Source: Scyliorhinus canicula | Taxonomy: Eukaryota | Assembly: GCF_902713615.1 (NCBI RefSeq) | Contig: NC_052149.1 | Span: forward strand, 125,987,256 to 126,051,255 | Direction: 5' to 3' | DNA length: 64,000 nt | Part shown: piece by piece, positions 4,264 through 38,360 of the stretch | Numbering within the stretch: the first letter of the stretch is position 1 | How the letters are laid out: the number at the start of each line of letters is the position of its first letter | Program-made: the position numbers and the translations under genes | Notes under the pieces: model-generated | Databases searched by the model: none | What the model was told of the DNA's origin: nothing | What the model saw: the letters and a program-made list of their open reading frames with translations, nothing else

Positions 4264-7200
4264 TGTAGTACCCTCAATAACGTCGCAAGAGAGTAGAACG
4301 GTAAAGAAGGCTTTAATAAGCTAAGAACTAGCCTGATGCCGAGACGGGTACTTACTGGGTGCCGCCTGCAGGGCGGCCCCTTATATACAACTCCCTGGTG
4401 GGCGGAGCCGGAGGCGGAGTCCCCCAGGGTTCCAAGCCCGGTCTTAAAGGGGACATCACCTTACATGATGCTAAGGGTACAGTAATACAGTAACCATTCA
4501 TCACATTTACCCCCTGTTTAAAAAAACCAAGTCCGGCGGGGGTGAAGTGGAATCACAAGTCTATTTGTTTCGGCGGCCAGATCATCCTCATCGACCTCTT
4601 CAGCTCGGGCAGTGGTGCGGTGGACACAGATGTCTTAGTTGACGGTACATCTGGGAGCACGGTGGTCGGAGCTTTGGTCGGGTTGGGGTAGAGGTCCGGG
4701 GCGCAGGGGGAATAGCTGGGGCTGGAGGTAGCAGTGCCAGCGCCGGTGGGGGGTGGAGGGGGGGGCGCTAGGGGGCACGCGCGGTCGGTGTCCACCGACA
4801 TGGAGGGGGACCGGGGAGGGGGGCAGTAGTAGGTGCCAGGTCCCACAGGGGAACCATGAGGGGGTGGCGTCTGCTGTGGGGGAACCAGCGGGTGCCAGAT
4901 CGTGGAGGGAAACCGTGTCTTGCCTGCCGTCGGGGTGCTCGACGTAGCCGTATTGGGGGTTCGCATGTAGTAGTCAGACCCTCTCGACCTCAGGGTCCGT
5001 TTTATGGCTCCTCGCCTGCCTCCAGAGAAGAACAGGTTCCGGAGTTGTCAGCCAAGGTGGAGACCCCGGAGGTGGACTTCCTGGGGAAGACAAACCAGCC
5101 GTTGTGAGGGGTCTCATTCGTGGCCTTGCAGAGGAGCGACCTAATGGAGTGTAGGGTATTGGGTAGGACCTCCTGCCAGCGGGTGGTTGGGAGACTTCTT
5201 GACCGTAGGGCCAGAAGGACAGCCTTCCAAACTGTCGCGTTCTCCCTCTCCACCTGCCCGTTTCCCTGCGGGTTATAACTGGTTATTCTGCTTGAGGCAA
5301 TGCCCTTGCTGAGCAGATACTGACGCAGCTCTTGGCTCATGAACGATGTACCCCGGTCACTGTGGATATCAGCGGGGAAACCGAACAGCGTGAAGGTGCT
5401 GTGCAGTGCCTTGATCACGGTGGCTGAGGTCATGTCGGGACAGGGGACGGCGGATGGGAAGAGGGAGAACTCGTCGATGACGGTTAGAAAGTAAGTATTG
5501 CAGTTGGTGGACGGGAGGGGGCCTTTGAAGTCCACGCTTAGTCTCTCAAAGGGCCGGAGGCCTTTACGAGGTGAGCCTTGTCTGGCCGGTAGAAGTGCGT
5601 TGCACTCCGCACAGATCTGGCAAGCCCTGGTCATGGCCTTGACCTCCTCGGTTGAGTAAGGTAGGTTGCGGGACTTGATAAAGTGGGCAAGCCGGGTAAC
5701 CCCCGGGTGACAGAGGTCATTGTGGATGGCTTGCAGGCGATTCTCCTGCGCGTTGGCGCACGTGCCGCGGGACAGGGCACCTGGGGGTTCGTTGAGCTCC
5801 CCTGGACAATACTTGATATCGTACGTGTAGGTAGAGAGTTCGATCCTCCACCTCAAGATTTTATCATTTTTAATTTTGCCCCGTTATGCATTATCAAACA
5901 TGAAGGCTACCGACCGTTGGTCGGTGACGAGGGTGAACCTCCTACCGGCAAGGTAGTGCCTCCAGTGCCGCACAGCCGCCACAATGGCTTGCGCTTCCTT
6001 CTCGACAGAGGAGCGTCGAATCTCGGAGGCGGTGAAAGTCCGGGAGAAGAAAGCTACTGGTCTGCCTGCCTGGTTGAGGGTAGCAGCCAGGGCGAAGTCT
6101 GACGCATTGCTCTCTCCCTGGAAAGGGATGGTTTCATCCACCGTGTGCATAGCAGCCTTGATGATGTCGGCCTTGATACGGCTGAAGGCCGACCGGGCCT
6201 CAGCCATCAGGGAAAATGTTGTGGTCTTTATGAGTGGGTGGGCTTTGTCCGCATATCTGGGGACCCACTGGGCGTAATAGGAGAAAAGCCCCAAGCACCG
6301 TTTGAGGGCCTTGAGGCTGCGGGGGAGGGGAAGTTCCTTAAGGGAGCGCATGCGATCGGGGTCGGGACCTAGGACCTCGTTTTCCATGATGTAGCTGAGG
6401 ATGGCGAGTCGGGTTGTGTGGAACATGCATTTTTCCTTGTTGTAGGTCAGGTTGAGGGCTCGGGCGGTCTGGAGGAACTTTTCGAGGTTCGCGTCATGGT
6501 CCTGCTGATCATGGCTGCAGATGGTGACATTGTCCAAGTATTTGTATGTAGGCCGCAAGTCGTACTGGTCCACCATTTGGTCCATCGCCCTCTGGAAGAC
6601 GGAGGCCCCATTTGTGACACCGAAGGGGCCCCTGCGGAAGTGGAGGAGCCGGCCGGCTGCTTCGAAGGCAGTATAGGGGTGGTCTTTCGGTCGGATAGGG
6701 AGCTGGTGGTAGGCGGATTTCAGATAGATATTGGTATGGTAGCATGACTAGGGGTATTACGGTACCTGGGAGTGTGAGCTGCCATTGGTGCAGAGGGCTC
6801 GCTGCCCATTGGCCCAAGTACCGTGTCCTCTGGATTCTCATTGGTCGAGTGGAAGGTAGCTCCGCCTACGAGGCGGGGTATAAGAACCCGTGTTCCCAGC
6901 AGCCAGGTTATTTCTGTACTCCTGCTGCTGGGCACACTTCTTGCTGATTAAAGCTTTTTGTTTCGGACTACACCTATGTTTCGCGTCCATTGATTGTGCA
7001 TCAAGTGGAAAATACCCGGTATTGAGCGATCCGATTTACCTGTTCTGCTATGTGAGGAAGGGTGTACGCACGAGCTGCGTGAAACGGTTTATTATCTGGC
7101 TATAATCCATGACCATCCGTTTCATTTCCCCGGACCGGACTACCACCACTTGTGCTCTCCAGTGGCTCTTGCTGGCCTCGATGACCCCCTCTCCCAGTAG

Positions 7201-15229: not shown

Positions 15230-15640
15230 TGAGTGGAGATGAGGCCGTAGCAGGGGGAACGGTCAGGGTGAGAGAGAGGAATGGTTTTATTGGGAACAAG
15301 GATATCAAAGGTGGAGGTGAGGGTGAGGTTGGGTAAATCAGTCGCTGCAGAAATGTTGTGGTGATCGGAGGGCTAGAGACAGATAGTTGGCATTTTGAAA
15401 GTGCCGTTGGAAGTGAATTGGGGAATAGGTTTTCCCAGGGATGGATACAGAAGGGGGTAGGGTTGGGGTGTGGAAGGGGGATGTGGGTGGGGAGTGATAC
15501 AAGGAAGTGATCAGTGATGGTCTTATCTGTGATTGAAACTATGGGAGTAGTGAGACCACGTGAGATGGTCAGATCAAGGGGGAGGTGGGAATATGGGTTG
15601 GAGAATTGTGATTGTGATGATTTAATCCCAGCAACTTTCA
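15230..15640 (-). mobile_element. L2-type endonuclease fragment
   Basis: Translation LDLTISRGLTTPIVSITDKTITDHFLVS. Confidence 0.6.
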
Positions 15641-15866
15641 GTCTCTTTTCTGATTTGAATCTTTCAACTCAGATATTCCAGATAAAACTGATCATTATAA
15701 AATGATTGATAATTGTCTTTGAATCCAAGCTTCTGCTGATGTGTCATTGATTGACAGGCCAACCAGCCAATCATGACAATCACTTGCTGAAATACAGCCA
15801 ATCAGCTGATGGGGAGGAGGAACATTTCCAAAGCACACACGAGACACAGACTGAATATTCTTAATG

Positions 15867-15872
15867 TTTATT
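15867..15872 (-). terminator. Probable poly(A) signal of the light-chain transcript
   Basis: First AATAAA I found on the minus strand downstream of the C stop, about 500 nt away. Confidence 0.55.
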
Positions 15873-16370
15873 ACCTTTTACAGATTTACATTGTCAGAAA
15901 GAAGACTTGAATAAACAGCCCAGCCAGAGAAAGCTGGAGAAATTCACAGGGAAAATATGGAGATTTTCTCAATGACATGAGAATGCTGTCCTTTAAAATG
16001 GTGACTAAACCTTAAATTGTAACTGCAGGGTGAGCAGGAAGGAGGTCTGGTTTCCTGAAGCAGAGATTTCAGGGGTCACGTTATTTTGGAACAGCTGACA
16101 GTCTTCAGCATCTTAGAGAGGTTTTACTTGGCATCACGAGTCTGCACTGTCCCATCAAACATTCCCAGGACAGATGCTGCATGGGATGACGTGCAGAGTA
16201 AATATCCCTCGACAATGTCCCAAAAACATGTCTTAACCCCTGACCCTCAGAAGTGCCTCAGTCCCGAGAAGGAGAGAGTTGTAATTCAGTGCTGACAATG
16301 ACCTTTGCCCTCCCAGCTCACCCCTGTTCTATTTAAAGTTGTGTCTCCTCCGTGGACTGTCTCTGACACT

Positions 16371-16699
16371 CTACGCACATTCTGATCTCCTGATGCTCTT
16401 GCTGAGGGCAGAGGAGAGGCTCACGTGGGTGAGGGCACAGGAGAAGCGGGCGTTGGATTCCCAGGCAGAGCCAGAGAGGGTCAGCAGGCTGCTGACGCTG
16501 TAGGTGTTGTCCGAAGCTCGCAGGTAGTTGCTGGTCTGAACCCCGTCCGAAATGGCTGCACCATCCTTCTTCCACTCCACCACCAGCTCATCGGGATAGA
16601 AGTGATTGGCAAGGCACACCAGGGTGGCAGTGCCCTTGGTCTTGACCTCCTCCAGGGAGGGGGGCAGCAGGGTCAGCGTTGGTTGTGAATTTTCACGGC
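16371..16699 (-). CDS. IGKC: Ig kappa constant-region exon
   Basis: Acceptor ctctttcag|gc, then RENSQPTLTLLPPSLEEVKTKGTATLVCLANHFYPDELVVEWKKDG...FSCALTHVSLSSALSKSIRRSECA*. Both C1-set cysteines, the Trp and the penultimate interchain Cys are present. Confidence 0.98.
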
Positions 16700-17821: not shown

Positions 17822-18140
17822 CCACACAATCCCTACAGTGCAGAAAGAGGCCATTTGACCCTTTGAGTCGGCACCAGCCCTCCAAACAGTACCGCACCCA
17901 GGTCCACTCCCCCGGCCAATCCCCACAGACCAATCTAACCTTTGGATTCTAAGTCACAATTTAACCTGGCTAATCCACTTAACCTGAATTTTCTTGGACT
18001 GTGGGAGGAAACCGGAGCACCCAAAGAAAACCCATGCAGACAGCGGGAGAACGTGCAAAATCCATAAAGTCACCCAAGGTTGGAATCGAACACATGTCTC
18101 CGGCGCTGTGAGGCAGAAGTGCCAACCACTCTGCCACCAT
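17822..18140 (-). mobile_element. tRNA-derived SINE with CR1-type 3' tail
   Basis: SINE head plus the tail acagtgcagaaagaggccatt, similar to CR1 3' ends. Confidence 0.8.
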
Positions 18141-20499: not shown

Positions 20500-20725
20500 G
20501 GTTTCTTTTAATTTCGAGTACCCAATTCATATTTTTCCCAATTAAGGGGCAATTTAGCGTGACCAATCCACCTACCCTGCACGTCTTCGGGTTGTGGGGG
20601 TGAGACCCACGCAGACACGGAGAGAATGTGCAAACTCCACACGGACAGTGATCCGGGGCCGGGATTAAACCCGGGCACTCAGTGCCATAGGTAGTAGTGC
20701 TAACCACTGCACCACCATGCCACCT
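20500..20725 (-). mobile_element. tRNA-derived SINE, short A-rich tail, 11-bp TSD
   Basis: TSD AGCACTGAAAT at 20489-20499 and 20726-20736. Confidence 0.88.
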
Positions 20726-21110
20726 AGCACTGAAATTGCTAATAGTATAAGTTTTTAAAGACACAATGTCCCTTCAAGAGACTGTTAACCAGCCAGGAAG
20801 CTCAAACTATTGATCAGAATTTTTGGGGGAACAGGTTGAACATTAACAAGCCACACACAGAGCGGGAGAACTTTATCCCAGAACATTGGAGCAGACTTGG
20901 AGCAACACATTTCACAAAGGATTCTGATCGGAGGTCAGTACAGAAGTTTCTAGATTTAATTTCAAACCCTGCCGCCCAGCACTGGGCTGAGGTCAAGGGT
21001 GAGGCTACAATTAGCCTCAGTGTCCGGGGGTCAGACAGGGTCATTGCTCCAAATAACCCCCTGCTCTTTGGAGGCTGAGAGTGTGCGAACAATGGGCGAG
21101 GGTCAGGATC

Positions 21111-21165
21111 AGGAATCTCCAAAGTTAAAGAAAGATTTGCATCTCTGGAGCATCTGAACCACCTG
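21111..21165. promoter_or_regulatory. Candidate J-C intronic enhancer core
   Basis: AGGAATCTCC (kB-like, 9/10), ATTTGCAT 21135-21142, CATCTG 21151-21156 and CACCTG 21160-21165, all within 55 bp of non-repeat intron. Confidence 0.5.
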
Positions 21166-21834
21166 ATGTTGTCCTCAAATGTTTTGCAGCCAATTGTGCA
21201 CAGCAAGATCCCAAAACAGCAATGAGTCAATGAGCATTTGGAGGAATGTTGAATCAGGGATAAATATCGGACTGAACTCGACCCAAAGAGAAAGTAACTG
21301 AGAGTCTCCCCAAAAGCCTGGAACACTGAAGCCACTGGATTGTGAGCCCTGCTGGACCTGTTTGTCATCAGAACTTTGCTAAGAGATAAGCAGGGAGTGG
21401 AGAGAGCAGAGTTAAAGCTGGGGGAAGTGGGACCTCGGTGTCTCACTGGGCTGCTGCTGCTGCTGTGATCAGTTATATCAGAGAGTGTGACAGGGAGCCA
21501 GAGCTCACATCAAACTCTGCCCGTGTCTGTCACACGCAGACTGACAGGAGTCTAGTGAGTGATTTCACTCCATGGTCCAGGAATGTGAACACAGTCTGCA
21601 AACGTCCAGATCTCCTCCACACGGTGGGTAAAAGCTGCTTACTTATATCTTGCTGCTTAAAGGGGGGAATGGAACTAAAGAAATACAGCTGGGCACCCTG
21701 TTCTACACAGTGTTCTTCAATGAACCATTTCATTCACTGCAGCTCCCCAATAACACCTTCAACTATTCAGCATTTGTGTTTGAGAAAGTTTCAGTATTGA
21801 AAGGGTTAATAACGGAGGATTGGGGTTTACTTAC

Positions 21835-21869
21835 TCAGTCTGAGCTTGGTTCCTTTACCGAACGTAAGC
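21835..21869 (-). CDS. IGKJ: Ig kappa J segment, LTFGKGTKLRL(S)
   Basis: g ctt acg ttc ggt aaa gga acc aag ctc aga ctg a|GTAAGT. It has the FGxGT motif and a consensus phase-1 donor that is in frame with the C exon. Confidence 0.97.
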
Positions 21870-21908
21870 CACACTGACAGCTTCCAGTGCAGGGGCTGTA
21901 CAAAAACC
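21870..21908 (+). other. 23-bp-spacer recombination signal sequence of J
   Basis: Read away from J: CACACTG (one mismatch, position 5), a 23-nt spacer acagcttccagtgcaggggctgt, then ACAAAAACC. V12/J23 is the kappa configuration. Confidence 0.96.
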
Positions 21909-22296: not shown

Positions 22297-22594
22297 TAGG
22301 GGAAGCTGTAACCTTGCTGACAGTAATAATCAGCGACATCCTCATTCTGCACATTGCTGATTTTCAGGCTGTATTGTGTTCCAGATCCACTGCCGGTGAA
22401 TCGGTCGGATATTCCTGTGAATCGGGTTGAGGCAGAGTAGATCAGCAGAGCCGGTTTCTGACCTTCTCGCTGTTGATACCAAGCAACATAACTGCTAACA
22501 GATTGACTGGCCGTACAGGTGATGGTCGCGGTCTGGCCCAGGCTCAATGACAACACCGGGGGAGACTGGGTCATGATGATGTCTCCACTGATAC
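22297..22594 (-). CDS. IGKV: Ig kappa light-chain V exon (germline, unrearranged)
   Basis: Acceptor cccctcag|gtatcagt, then [99 protein letters not shown]. The conserved Cys, Trp and YYC are intact, with no stops. Confidence 0.98.
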
Positions 22595-22888: not shown

Positions 22889-22984
22889 CTTTATAAAGCT
22901 GCAGCCTGTGAGTGTCTGACTGCCCGTTCCTCAGTATGTAAATGGTATGAGGCAGAGACACCACGTCAGCACCTTCACTTCCTC
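22889..22984 (-). promoter_or_regulatory. V promoter: TATA box, degenerate octamer, CRE-like and PU.1-like sites
   Basis: On the coding strand: TATAAA 22890-22895 (61 nt upstream of ATG), ATTTACAT 22936-22943, TGACGTGG at about 22961-22968, and GAGGAAGTGAA 22974-22984. Confidence 0.65.
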
Positions 22985-23299
22985 TTCTTCTCTCTCACTC
23001 ACTCCCTCCCTCAGTATCTGTCCCTCAGTCTCTGCTCTCTCTCTCTCTCTTCCTGTCTCTTTTCTCCTGTGTCAGTTTCCCACTTTCTGCCTCTGACTCT
23101 CCCTCTCTCTGACTGTCTCTATGTATTCTCTTTCCTTTTTCTCTCTTTTTGTCCATCTCTCTCACTCTTTCTTTCTCTCTCTCTCTCTCAGTATCCCTCT
23201 ATCTCTCTGTACCATTCTCCATCATCCTGCAATTCTCCAACTGATCTCTGTAACTGGTGTCATTATTGGAGATTGGAACACTTTAAGTACTTGTGCAGC

Positions 23300-24420
23300 A
23301 GTTAAATGCTTCCCTCTCTCTCTCTCTGTCAGTCTGCCCCTCGCTCTCTCTTTCCCACACTCTCCCAGGTGGATCACAGTTAAATGCTTCCCTCTCTCTC
23401 TCTCTCTCTGTCAGTCTGCCCCTCGCTCTCTCTTTCCCACATTCTCCCAGGTGGATCACAGTTAAATGCTTCCCTCTCTCTCTCTGTCACAGTCTGCTCC
23501 TCGCTCTCTCTTTCCCACACTCTCCCAGGTGGATCACAGTTAAATGCTTCCCTCTCTCTCTCTCTGTCACAGTCTGCCCCTCACTATCTCTTTCCCACAC
23601 TTTCCCAGGTGGATCACAGTTAAATGCTTCCCTCTCTCTCTGTCACAGTCTGCCCCTCGCTCTCTCTTTCCCACACTTTCCCAGGTGGATCACAGTTAAA
23701 AGCTTCCCCCCCCCCCGTCCCCCCTCTCTCTCTATCACAGTCTGCTCCTCGCTCTCTCTTTCCCACACTCTCCCAGGTGGATCACAGTTAAATGCTTCCC
23801 TCTCTCTCTCTGTCACAGTCTGCCCCTCACTCTCTCTTTCCCATACTCTCCCAGGTGGATCACAGTTAAATGCTCCCCCCTCTCTCTCTGTCACAGTCTG
23901 CTCCTCGCTCTCTCTTTCCCACACTCTCCCAGGTGGATCACAGTTAAATGCTTCCCCCTCTCTCTCTGTCACAGTCTGTTCCTCGCTCTCTCTTTCCCAC
24001 ACTCTCCCAGGTGGATCACAGTTAAATGCTTCCCTCTCTCTCTCGGTCACAGTCTGTTCCTCGCTCTCTCTATCCCACACTCTCCCAGGTGGATCACAGT
24101 TAAATGCTTCCCTCTCTCTCTCTGTCACAGTCTGTTCCTCGCTCTCTCTTTCCCACACTCTCCCAGGTGGATCACAGTTAAATGCTTCCCTCTCTCTCTC
24201 ACTCTGTCAGTCTGTTCCTCGCTCTCTCTATCCCACGCTCTCCCAGGTGGATCACAGTTAAATGCTTCCCTCTCTCTCTCACTCTGTCAGTCTGTTCCTC
24301 GCTCTCTCTATCCCACACTCTCCCAGGTGGATCACAGTTAAATGCTTCCCTCTCTCTCTCTCGGTCACAGTCTGCTCCTCGCTCTCTCTTTCCCACACTC
24401 TCCCAGGTGGATCATAGTTA
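23300..24420. repeat. ~60-bp pyrimidine-rich minisatellite, about 19 copies, directly upstream of the V promoter
   Basis: Unit ctctcccaggtggatcacagttaaatgcttcc(ct)n...gtcacagtctgctcctcgctctctctttcccaca. Confidence 0.95.
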
Positions 24421-24864
24421 AATGTAGGATAAATCTTCCTCTGCTCTGCGTCAACAATGGAGGTTAACTCTTGACCCCAGAAGCATATCTTCTGAAGTAA
24501 GGCCCCATTTCCCACATTGACCATGCTGTGGCCTTGCTCAGTCAGACTGACAGATCATTGTCAGATTAAGGGTAGTTCTGTGCTGTTGGTCTATTCTCAC
24601 TGGGCACTGGTTCAGACACAATATTTAATGAAGGCCCAGCAGAGAGAGGATATCCTCACCCCATTAGTGTGAGCTGGAGGGACAGAGACTGAGCCACTGA
24701 TGCATCCTGTCCATTCAGAGCACATTCAGACCCCTTCCCCCCTCCTTCCCCTTCCATGGTCAGTCTCTGGGTCCTGGTGTTTAACTGGGATGAGGGTTGG
24801 ATAACCACACATTTACAACATAAAGGAACCATCCTCCTTATCGACCATGGTGTCCATGTCTTAA

Positions 24865-26315
24865 CTGACCCTCCAATCCGGACCAGTAAACATGGGCCTC
24901 CTTCCCACTGACCCTCCAATAGGGACCAGTAAACATGAGCCTCCTTCCCACTGACCCTCCAATAGGGACCAGTAAACATAGGCCTCCTTCCAACTGACCC
25001 TCCAATAGGGACCAGTTAACATGGGCCTCCTTCCCACTGGACCCTCCAATAGGGACCAGTAAACATGGGCCTCCTTCCCACTGGGCTCTCCAATAGGGAC
25101 AAGTAAACATAGGCCTCCTTCCCACTGGACCCTCCAATAGGGACCAGTAAACATGGGCCTCCTTCCCACTGGACCTCCAATAGGGACCAGTAAACATGGG
25201 CCTCCTTCCCACTGGGCCCTCCAATAGGGACCAGTAAACATGGGCCTTCTTCCCACTGGATCCTTCAATAGGGACCAGTAAACATGGGCCTCCTTCCCAC
25301 TGGACCCTCCAATAGGGACCAGTAAACATAGGCCTCCTTCCAACTGACCCTCCAATAGGGACCAGTTAACATGGGCCTCCTTCCCACTGGACCCTCCAAT
25401 AGGGACCAGTAAACATGGGCCTCCTTCCCACTGGACCCTCCAATAGGGACCAGTAAACATGGACCTCCTTCCCACTGGATCCTCCAATAGGGACCAGTAA
25501 ACATGGGCCTTCCTTCCCACTGGGCCCTCCAATAGGGACCAGTAAACATAGGCCTCCTTCCCACTGACCCTCCAATAGGGACCAGTTAACATGGGCCTCC
25601 TTCCCACTGGACCCTCCAATAGGGACCAGTAAACATGGGCCTCCTTCCCACTGGACCTCCAATAGGGACCAGTAAACATGGGCCTCCTTCCCACTGGGCC
25701 CTCCAATAGGGACCAGTAAACATGGGCCTTCTTCCCACTGGATCCTTCAATAGGGACCAGTAAACATGGGCCTCCTTCCCACTGGATCCTCCAATAGGGA
25801 CCAGTAAACATAGGCCTCCTTCCAACTGACCCTCCAATAGGGACCAGTTAACATGGGCCTCCTTCCCACTGGACCCTCCAATAGGGACCAGTAAACATGG
25901 GCCTCCTTCCCACTGGGCTCTCCAATAGGGACAAGTAAACATAGGCCTCCTTCCCACTGGACCCTCCAATAGGGACCAGTAAACATGGGCCTCCTTCCCA
26001 CTGGACCTCCAATAGGGACCAGTAAACATGGGCCTCCTTCCCACTGGGCCCTCCAATAGGGACCAGTAAACATGGGCCTCCTTCCCACTGGATCCTTCAA
26101 TAGGGACCAGTAAACATGGGACTCCTTCCCACTGGATCCTCCAATAGGGACCAGTAAACATGGGCCTTATTCCCACTGGGCCCTCCAATAGGGACCAGTA
26201 AACATGGGCCTCCTTCCCACTGGACCCTCCAATAGGGACCAGTAAACATGGGCCTTCTTCCCACTGGACCCTCCAATAGGGACCAGTAAACATGGGCCTC
26301 CTTCCCACTGGACCT
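24865..26315. repeat. 43-45-bp minisatellite, about 33 copies
   Basis: Unit ggaccctccaatagggaccagtaaacatgggcctccttcccact; period of 44 measured from 25021 to 25065. Confidence 0.97.
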
Positions 26316-30736: not shown

Positions 30737-31637
30737 TGTAAATGTCCTTCCTGTTTATTCCTTTACTTCCCCTTTCTTTTATTTTTGCTATTACATCTTT
30801 AATCCATAGATAATTTATGGACCTGTCTCTTTAAGGAAAGTGGCCTGTGCCTTTAATTTGAACAGAAGAATCCAGAAAAGACTGCTGATTGCAGATTGGC
30901 CAGTGTCAGTGATGACTCGGTTTGACCGATTTGGCTGGTGGCCAATAAATGACCCCAAAAGGCCGTGTTCTGCCCGGTAACAGGTTGTGCTTGGATCTGT
31001 TCCCACTGAAATGGCTCAGAGACCTAATGTGGTTTCAGTTTCGCGATGGAAGGTGAGAGATAAAACTTATCTTTTTTGCATTTTGTTCCAGAAATAACCA
31101 CCAAATTCTCACCAAATGCCCACTTTGGGAATCAGCTCTCGCTGCAGAAAAGGCTGATGTGAAGCCAGGCGCCTGGGCTGGAAAAGCTGTGAGTAAGGTC
31201 TACTGCTGAACGGCAAAGAAGATAATTGCGAGCTGTAGTTCAGCAACGTTAATCCACACTCATACTGTGAAGAAAGTACATTAAAGAACTCATCATCTGA
31301 AGCAAGGACTCTTATCTTTTGATCTGAAGGCTTATTATTGTAACTCCTTTCCACCCCTCTGTGCTTGTTTGTCTAGTGTGTGTGGGTGGAGGGTGGGACG
31401 GTTAAAGGAGGAGTCAGGTGCTAACATGTCATTAAGCAACTGTGTTTACTGCATATTTCATATTTGTCCTTGTTATAAATAAAAAGTAATTGTGAATAAA
31501 CTTACAAACCTGGTGACTGTAATTATCAGATAGCCAAAGGCCAAATGTTTTGGGTATCTTTATGAGAATTATTGGTTAATTCACTTGTGTTGTGACTCTG
31601 GGCATGTGGGGCTGGAATTGACCGTGCACTTGCCCAG
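30737..31637 (+). mobile_element. Solo LTR, ~0.9 kb (family shared with 55716-56952)
   Basis: Inserted in LINE sequence aaggc|tgtaatg. The 3' ~170 bp (ttataaataaa...caaacctggtg...ggggctggaattgac) matches the reverse complement of 55720-55890. Confidence 0.75.
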
Positions 31638-37876: not shown

Positions 37877-38360
37877 ATGGTCGGAACAGGAGGTGGGCTG
37901 GAGTTTAAACAATGAGTTGAATGTAGACGGAGTGTCATTAGTGGGTAATGGACAATGGACATTGTGTCCATGAGCTTCTTGAAAAGATGTCTTTCTCTGT
38001 TTCCCTTTCCAGCTCCAGGGCTCTCATTAAGGAGCTGAAAGAATATTTAGTGAAGAAGTTTCCGGACTGTGCGGGCTGTGTGAAGGGTTTGGGCAGTAAC
38101 TGATGATTGCAGCTCCTTGTTCTGTCTGTTCCTCCCTCCCCACTGATCAAACCGTTAACCTCCTGTCACAGTGAGTGAAATGAGAATGGATATCATAGCG
38201 TCAGTCACAGAAAACAACAGCCTCACTGTCTGAGACACTGGGACACACATCACTGCCTCACCTCAAAGAACGGAGCACTAATCCCCTCCCACCATGCTGA
38301 GAAACCATCCAGCATGGGAAATATACTGACAAACACCACCTCACACCCAGAGAACAGCTT

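Follow-up and report, generated by a model that had tools for sequence, protein, structure and literature searches.

Introduction

The kappa light-chain genes of mouse and human have an intronic enhancer, iE-kappa, which is situated nearer to C-kappa and behind a matrix attachment region. The mouse heavy-chain locus has the intronic enhancer E-mu, where sterile and antisense transcripts start, the antisense ones running through J and the recombination signals. In teleosts, the functionally tested immunoglobulin enhancers are located 3' of C or in the space between clusters. The light-chain enhancers of cod use variant octamers and E-boxes as working sites. Variant octamers and an E-box are also given as working sites in the catfish E-mu3' enhancer (PMC1800861).

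For sharks, a literature search found no description of an immunoglobulin or light-chain enhancer, nor of conservation in a J-C intron. The subject bears on the way in which the numerous small V-J-C clusters of these animals are turned on, rearranged and excluded. The cluster analysed here is found in a stretch of 64,000 nucleotides of Scyliorhinus canicula DNA (the window). A sequence-only reading had placed a candidate iE-kappa-like enhancer at 21100-21430, where a kB-like site, an octamer and two E-boxes are followed by a PU.1-type site. The explanation favoured here, held with moderate confidence, is that this motif cluster arose by the decay of a SINE in near-neutral intron, and that a different block, next to J, is a selected cis-regulatory module.

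The kappa cluster and the sequences compared

The cluster is unrearranged and lies on the minus strand (Table 1); the exons of the gene model were searched one by one, by reference. The translated V open reading frame is 79-87% identical in amino acids to shark proteins named "immunoglobulin kappa light chain-like", from Cetorhinus, Scyliorhinus torazame, Chiloscyllium, Heterodontus and Hemiscyllium. Paralogues of 20750-21900, V, C and the J-proximal block were sought, and no second kappa cluster was found within the 64-kb window. The J-C intron measures 5,136 bp, in agreement with the earlier figure of about 5.1 kb, and the distance of about 0.7 kb from J is also borne out, since the motif cluster lies 670-724 bp 3' of J.

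Table 1. Positions in the window of the kappa gene, the reported motifs, the intron blocks and the antisense exons
Feature	Position	Strand	Remarks
Leader	22829-22781	-	kappa gene
V-kappa exon	22594-22297	-	open reading frame
12-spacer recombination signal after V exon	22296-22269	-	
23-spacer recombination signal of J	21908-21870	-	heptamer 21876-21870, nonamer 21908-21900
J segment	21869-21835	-	
J-C intron	21834-16699	-	5,136 bp
C-kappa exon	16698-16371	-	open reading frame; spliced J-C reads carry the sequence of 16669-16698
Block 1, J-proximal conserved non-coding block	21296-21834	-	about 540 bp; from the 12-sequence alignment
Block 2, alignable intron segment holding the motif cluster	20940-21295	-	near-neutral divergence
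3' remnant of tRNA-derived SINE	21127-21272	-	about 146 bp, internal deletion; from profile match and full-length orthologous copies
kB-like site AGGAATCTCC	21111-21120	+	9/10 to GGGRNWYYCC, mismatch at position 1; 7 bp past the SINE tail, in flanking DNA
Perfect octamer ATTTGCAT	21135-21142	+	derived from the SINE tail (gene strand: AAATGCAAGT)
E-box CATCTG	21151-21156	+	in SINE remnant
E-box CACCTG	21160-21165	+	in SINE remnant
PU.1-type site GGGGAAGT	21421-21428	+	within block 1
First seen exon of spliced antisense RNA	21514-21623	+	donor GT at 21624
Antisense exon in V-J spacer	22075 to ~22173	+	then GTGAGA
Antisense-RNA exon	38013-38103	+	open reading frame ending ...KELKEYLVKKFPDCAGCVKGLGSN, then stop

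The comparison set consists of 11 kappa clusters from six other sharks of four orders, all of them galeomorph. S. torazame and Cetorhinus maximus contribute three clusters each (L002, L007 and L008; L001, L004 and L009), Heterodontus francisci two (L005 and L011), and Chiloscyllium punctatum (L003), Hemiscyllium ocellatum (L006) and Stegostoma tigrinum (L010) one each. Among the matches of the word searches there was no ray or chimaera kappa gene. S. torazame is closest to the window, with 87% identity across nearly the whole intron.

Several features outside the intron are shared with other sharks. Elements of the V promoter are conserved in six species (22889-22985, minus strand): a TATA box, TTTATAAAG, at 22889-22897, a perfect PU.1/Ets site, AGAGGAAGTG, at 22976-22985, and, at 22936-22943, a variant octamer, ATTTACAT, instead of the canonical one. 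Some 770 bp lying 3' of the C stop codon (15600-16370) are 68-97% identical in four to five distant species; such conservation seems to exceed the needs of a 3' UTR, and the segment could be a second regulatory candidate. Upstream of V there are two tandem-repeat arrays (23000-24300 and 24800-26300; a CT-rich array and a minisatellite), which align at 63-95% to the upstream flanks of the Cetorhinus, Heterodontus and Chiloscyllium clusters. Between them lies a non-repeat, non-coding block (24400-24800) that is common to four distant species.

The V-J arrangement differs in the Hemiscyllium cluster. Here V and J stand about 22 bp apart in the germline assembly (L006:3510-3536), without a V-J spacer, and the kappa gene resembles one whose V and J are joined in the germline. 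Behind this close-set pair, block 1 stays conserved.

Turnover of the motif cluster

All five motifs are present on the plus strand where they had been reported, and the 9/10 match of the kB-like site is confirmed. In 2,000 first-order Markov simulations of the 64-kb window, an octamer with at least two E2A-type E-boxes in 60 bp occurred in 2.35% of simulated windows, and the same combination with a kB-like site in 0.25%. The components are less striking: the window has three octamers where 1.5 are expected, and the other two are very common, the kB-like pattern with 187 sites and the E-box with 136. Given that the motif set was picked after the fact, the chance figures are suggestive at best. 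The simulations also flatter the cluster, because the tail of the SINE described below holds near-matches (ATGCAAGT, CACCTC and CGCCTG), from which one base change suffices.

One reading makes the kB-like/octamer/E-box cluster (21111-21165) the functional core of an iE-kappa-like enhancer, a core that the catshark lineage might have gained by exapting a SINE tail and adding it to an older element. The nominal rarity of the combination and its location in a kappa J-C intron speak for this view. Comparison with other sharks makes this unlikely. Firstly, among the nine sequences that align here, a perfect octamer is confined to the window and S. torazame L002. At its position Cetorhinus has GCTTGCAT, Heterodontus and Stegostoma ACTTGCAT, and Chiloscyllium AATTGCAT, with TTGCAT invariant in all nine, a point in favour of the cluster. 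Secondly, the second E-box is restricted to the same two sequences, with CACCTC, CAACTC or CACTTC elsewhere, and outside the catshark lineage no E-box stands at this position. The first E-box is inconsistent; it is replaced by CGCCTA, CACCTG, TGCCTG or CACATG, which are E-boxes in some lineages only. Thirdly, the PU.1-type site fails as support, as its GGAA core is found only in the window and the S. torazame clusters, the position being occupied by GGAGGT in Cetorhinus, Heterodontus, Chiloscyllium and Hemiscyllium and by GGATGT in Stegostoma.

The kB-like site appears to be the sole clustered motif with a compatible pattern in most species, which counts for the cluster. It is identical in S. 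torazame L002 and Cetorhinus L001 and L004, and reads AGAAATCTCC in Cetorhinus L009, AGGAGCCTCC in Heterodontus, AGGGGACTCC in Chiloscyllium and AGGAGACTCC in Stegostoma. Six of its ten columns are invariant, the frame AGG-R-N-N-CTCC is kept in eight of the nine sequences, and the variable bases fall mainly at degenerate positions; the full consensus is matched in no sequence. Taken as a whole, the motif columns show no excess invariance over neighbouring columns (16 of 30 against 48 of 114 invariant, p = 0.31).

The surrounding segment, block 2, gives a similar picture. In favour of the cluster, it is present at the same site in five of the six species; in Hemiscyllium L006 it was recovered in part. 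Its identity to five distant species is 71-82%, no better than that of alignable intron elsewhere (p = 0.37-0.90) and lower in Cetorhinus. Two of the three S. torazame clusters, L007 and L008, lack window positions 21343/21236-21035 and with them the motif segment, although the flanking sequences, block 1 and 21035-20824, can both be aligned. One contig of a related organism, B, skips 21061-21179. The motif cluster appears to be dispensable, because sister clusters are without it. Since it is retained in five of the six species and its kB-like site varies mainly at degenerate positions, block 2 may have a weak role.

SINE origin of the motifs

The interval had been described as the only large non-repeat part of the intron. 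This does not hold for 21127-21272, which is the remnant of a tRNA-derived SINE. Of the four clustered motifs only the kB-like site falls outside it; the two E-boxes and the octamer lie within its tail. Full-length copies of about 405 bp occupy the same site in Cetorhinus (L001, ~5870-6273) and Heterodontus (L005, ~15275-15676). These have a tRNA-like head, with an A-box-like CTCAGTGGGTAGCAC and a B-box-like GGTTCAAGTCCCAC, then a body, and a short, T-rich tail that ends in ...AAATGCAAG(T/C)CTTTCTTT. A profile of the full-length copies matches window 21277-21117 with E = 2e-21. The window and S. torazame L002 keep the 3' part of the SINE only, from which an internal stretch is deleted.

Heterodontus, Chiloscyllium, Hemiscyllium and Stegostoma have a second copy, at a distance of a few hundred bases. 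Profile searches of about 270 kb (the window and the 11 loci) found no further copies outside the intron site, and ARAGORN called no tRNA. A 40-bp core of the element recurs with different flanks in 7-11 other contigs per DNA run, an indirect sign that the family is dispersed. The ~405-bp unit is probably a common shark repeat. A second, unrelated SINE family is represented at 20510-20720, with more copies, for example, at ~17830-18140 of the window and in all three S. torazame clusters.

Because the tail contains near-matches to the motifs, the octamer and both E-boxes are best read as its single-base derivatives. The ancient SINE would have inserted before the split of the four galeomorph orders, and the octamer and both E-boxes would have arisen by point changes as its tail decayed in near-neutral intron (21100-21295). 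The motif cluster as such would then belong to the catshark lineage only. Given that the divergence of block 2 is that of the intron at large, the absence of the motifs from other clusters whose flanks align and their derivation from a repeat appear largely to undo the case for the cluster as an enhancer core. This removes a false lead, a motif cluster probably made by SINE decay, and replaces it with a sharply bounded candidate of 540 bp.

A conserved block next to J

Block 1 directly follows the J splice donor, aligns in all 12 sequences and is the only part of the intron that is complete in each of them. Its identity to the window is 97-98% in S. torazame, 92-93% in Cetorhinus, 85-92% in Heterodontus and 86-88% in Chiloscyllium, Hemiscyllium and Stegostoma. 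In its core (21405-21834), all 430 positions are aligned in all six species; MAFFT identities there are 97.7-97.9% for S. torazame, 92.9-93.2% for Cetorhinus, 91.2-91.7% for Heterodontus, 87.9-88.0% for Chiloscyllium and Hemiscyllium, and 86.2% for Stegostoma. Across the 12 sequences, 264 of 444 core columns are invariant, some of them in unbroken runs. By per-base BLAST counts, block 1 is 85-97% identical versus 68-87% for the remaining alignable intron (p 0.04 to 1e-12), and merely 3-45% of the rest of the intron can be aligned in distant species. The conservation of block 1 equals or exceeds that of the V exon (74-95%) and is like that of the C exon (83-96%).

Sharks evolve slowly and the comparison is limited to alignable DNA, so that block 1 could in principle reflect a locally low mutation rate or an alignment bias, and the motif cluster chance, with nothing functional in either. 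However, block 1 diverges at about one third to two thirds of the rate of the alignable remainder of the same intron in the same species pairs, and it alone among intron parts is complete in all 12 sequences; lack of function is therefore highly improbable. Block 1 (21296-21834) would be under strong purifying selection.

This selection would not be on a protein. Block 1 has stops in all six frames in every species, indels of 1, 4 and 25 bp, and no codon periodicity among its substitutions in the 12-sequence alignment. Two open reading frames that touch it, one of 210 amino acids on the minus strand (20814-21446) and one of 120 on the plus strand (21438-21800), were rejected on account of frame-breaking indels, stops in other species and the same want of codon periodicity. 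A structured RNA was likewise rejected: the RNAalifold covariation term is positive (+3.8), with 2 compensatory pairs in 136. No Rfam match was obtained in block 1, where SNORD88 scores 18.5 bits and so stays below its gathering threshold of 46 (E = 0.86).

Several motifs in block 1, short ones picked from a panel, are perfectly conserved: the POU-like AATGAAAT (21727-34), the IRF-type half site AGTGAAA (21563-69), the GATA motif AGATAA (21384-89) and TGCTGAA (21766-72). In ten sequences an E-box near 21690 reads CAGCTG; Hemiscyllium has CACCTG there and Stegostoma TAGCTG. In all three orectolobiforms (L003, L006 and L010) an insertion of 3.2-3.9 kb interrupts the block at 21404/5, and both halves are still conserved.

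The same three sequences share a small rearrangement. Positions 21555-21559 read GTGAG in them and CTCAC in all others, a 5-bp reverse-complement switch which turns an inverted repeat with CAGTGAG at ~21443 into a direct repeat. It looks like a template-switch mutation.

On these grounds block 1 is a better enhancer candidate than the motif cluster. The proposal of an iE-kappa-like element in 21100-21430 is thus upheld in part. An intronic element is plausible, given that 21296-21430 falls in the conserved block, while the motif evidence for it does not stand. The idea of an intronic control element gains support through another, bounded sequence that overlaps the last 135 bp of that interval.

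RNA from the locus

Two RNA runs were used, one from lymphoid tissue (X6) and one made with oligo-dT (X24). In X6, the V exon has a depth of 2e4-7e4, there are many V-J joints with added letters, and J is spliced to C. The depth within the intron is 27-47 across block 1 and about 7 across the motif cluster. In DNA, the contig with block 1 has a k-mer depth of roughly 70 and those with the motif cluster one of roughly 22. On this rough measure block 1 would exist in about three near-identical copies, one of which alone runs on into the motif segment, and such an arrangement would explain the ratio of RNA depths.

Since block 1 starts right at the splice donor of J and is part of the sense pre-mRNA, it might exert its effect there, for example by means of intronic signals which ensure that J is spliced to C over a long, repeat-filled intron. 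Cryptic splicing does occur in this gene. In the oligo-dT RNA, eight sense reads join a cryptic donor in the V exon (AAG|GTCAGA, 22463) to the C exon. Nevertheless, 540 bp of near-exonic conservation is far above the needs of known intronic splicing enhancers, no conserved RNA structure is seen, and the orectolobiform insertion splits the block with no loss of conservation in its halves. We regard a role in splicing as very unlikely.

Another 12 sense reads of the oligo-dT run use a cryptic acceptor at 22518, to which they splice a sequence located at 31092. The reads with either kind of odd sense splice seem to stem from sterile transcription of clusters that are not rearranged.

The locus also yields a spliced, polyadenylated antisense RNA. 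Its joint from 21622/3 to 22074/5, with GT..AG on the plus strand, is present in one X6 contig and five X24 reads. Other X24 reads join the same donor to a 30-mer that has an exact match at window 38013, where a strong acceptor precedes it. The X24 coverage of the antisense RNA is 0 at 21449, 10 at 21537 and 17 at 21618, which would place its 5' end within block 1, between 21450 and 21537; the first exon seen could have a further partner upstream. A TATA-like TTATATCA at 21472-21479 stands 35-60 bp before this putative 5' end and is conserved outside the orectolobiforms. The antisense donor is kept in six of seven species.

These data could mean that block 1 serves an independent antisense lncRNA as promoter and first exon, or that antisense transcription itself is what matters, and not a classical kappa enhancer. 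The spliced plus-strand RNA, in which the donor at 21624 is used for joints with both 22075 and 38013, fits this reading. So do the donor, which in the orectolobiforms is even nearer to consensus (GTGAGT), and the TATA-like motif, 35-40 bp ahead of the first covered bases. However, conservation runs 210 bp past the donor, as far as J, the TATA-like motif is lost in three orectolobiform species, and the RNA level is low (10-17 reads in X24). A short open reading frame from a conserved ATG, read off the alignment, changes mostly by replacement substitutions. We consider a lncRNA alone to be rather unlikely.

In the favoured explanation, block 1 would be the cis-regulatory module of the cluster, an intronic enhancer that also serves as an antisense germline promoter. 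Antisense germline transcription would run from it through J, the recombination signal of J and the V-J spacer. In such a role it would be comparable to iE-kappa or to the heavy-chain intronic enhancer of the mouse. Possibly, although this is more tentative, block 1 is an ancestral, cluster-autonomous control element of shark kappa genes, an enhancer and antisense germline promoter that opens J and its recombination signal and has been kept through all of galeomorph history. Were this the case, block 1 would be the first cis-regulatory element to be defined for an antibody locus of the cluster type. A natural experiment is at hand in that the motif segment is present in some clusters and missing from others.

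Comparison with known systems

The history of the SINE recalls AmnSINE1 and LF-SINE, from which conserved elements are derived: here too, an ancient SINE lies at an orthologous site across orders, beside a regulatory candidate. In contrast to them, the shark SINE part is neutral in its divergence and lost in some clusters, and so gives no sign of exaptation.

A likeness to the teleost enhancers is found in the presence of variant motifs, with the POU-like AATGAAAT in block 1 and the variant octamer ATTTACAT in the V promoter. The teleost elements differ in their position, 3' of C or between clusters, and in having been functionally tested, whereas the shark sites are known from their sequence.

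The mouse and human iE-kappa is likewise located in the kappa J-C intron. The window has a kB-like site beside E-boxes, and block 1 a conserved E-box. The differences are that iE-kappa is nearer to C-kappa, whereas block 1 abuts the J donor, that the kB-like site of the window has A at position 1, and that the E-boxes of its reported cluster are not conserved.

From mouse E-mu, block 1 differs in belonging to a light-chain cluster that has a single V and a single J, and in that its putative antisense start is placed from coverage. It is similar to E-mu in its position just downstream of J, and in the non-coding antisense RNA that passes back through J and the recombination signals.
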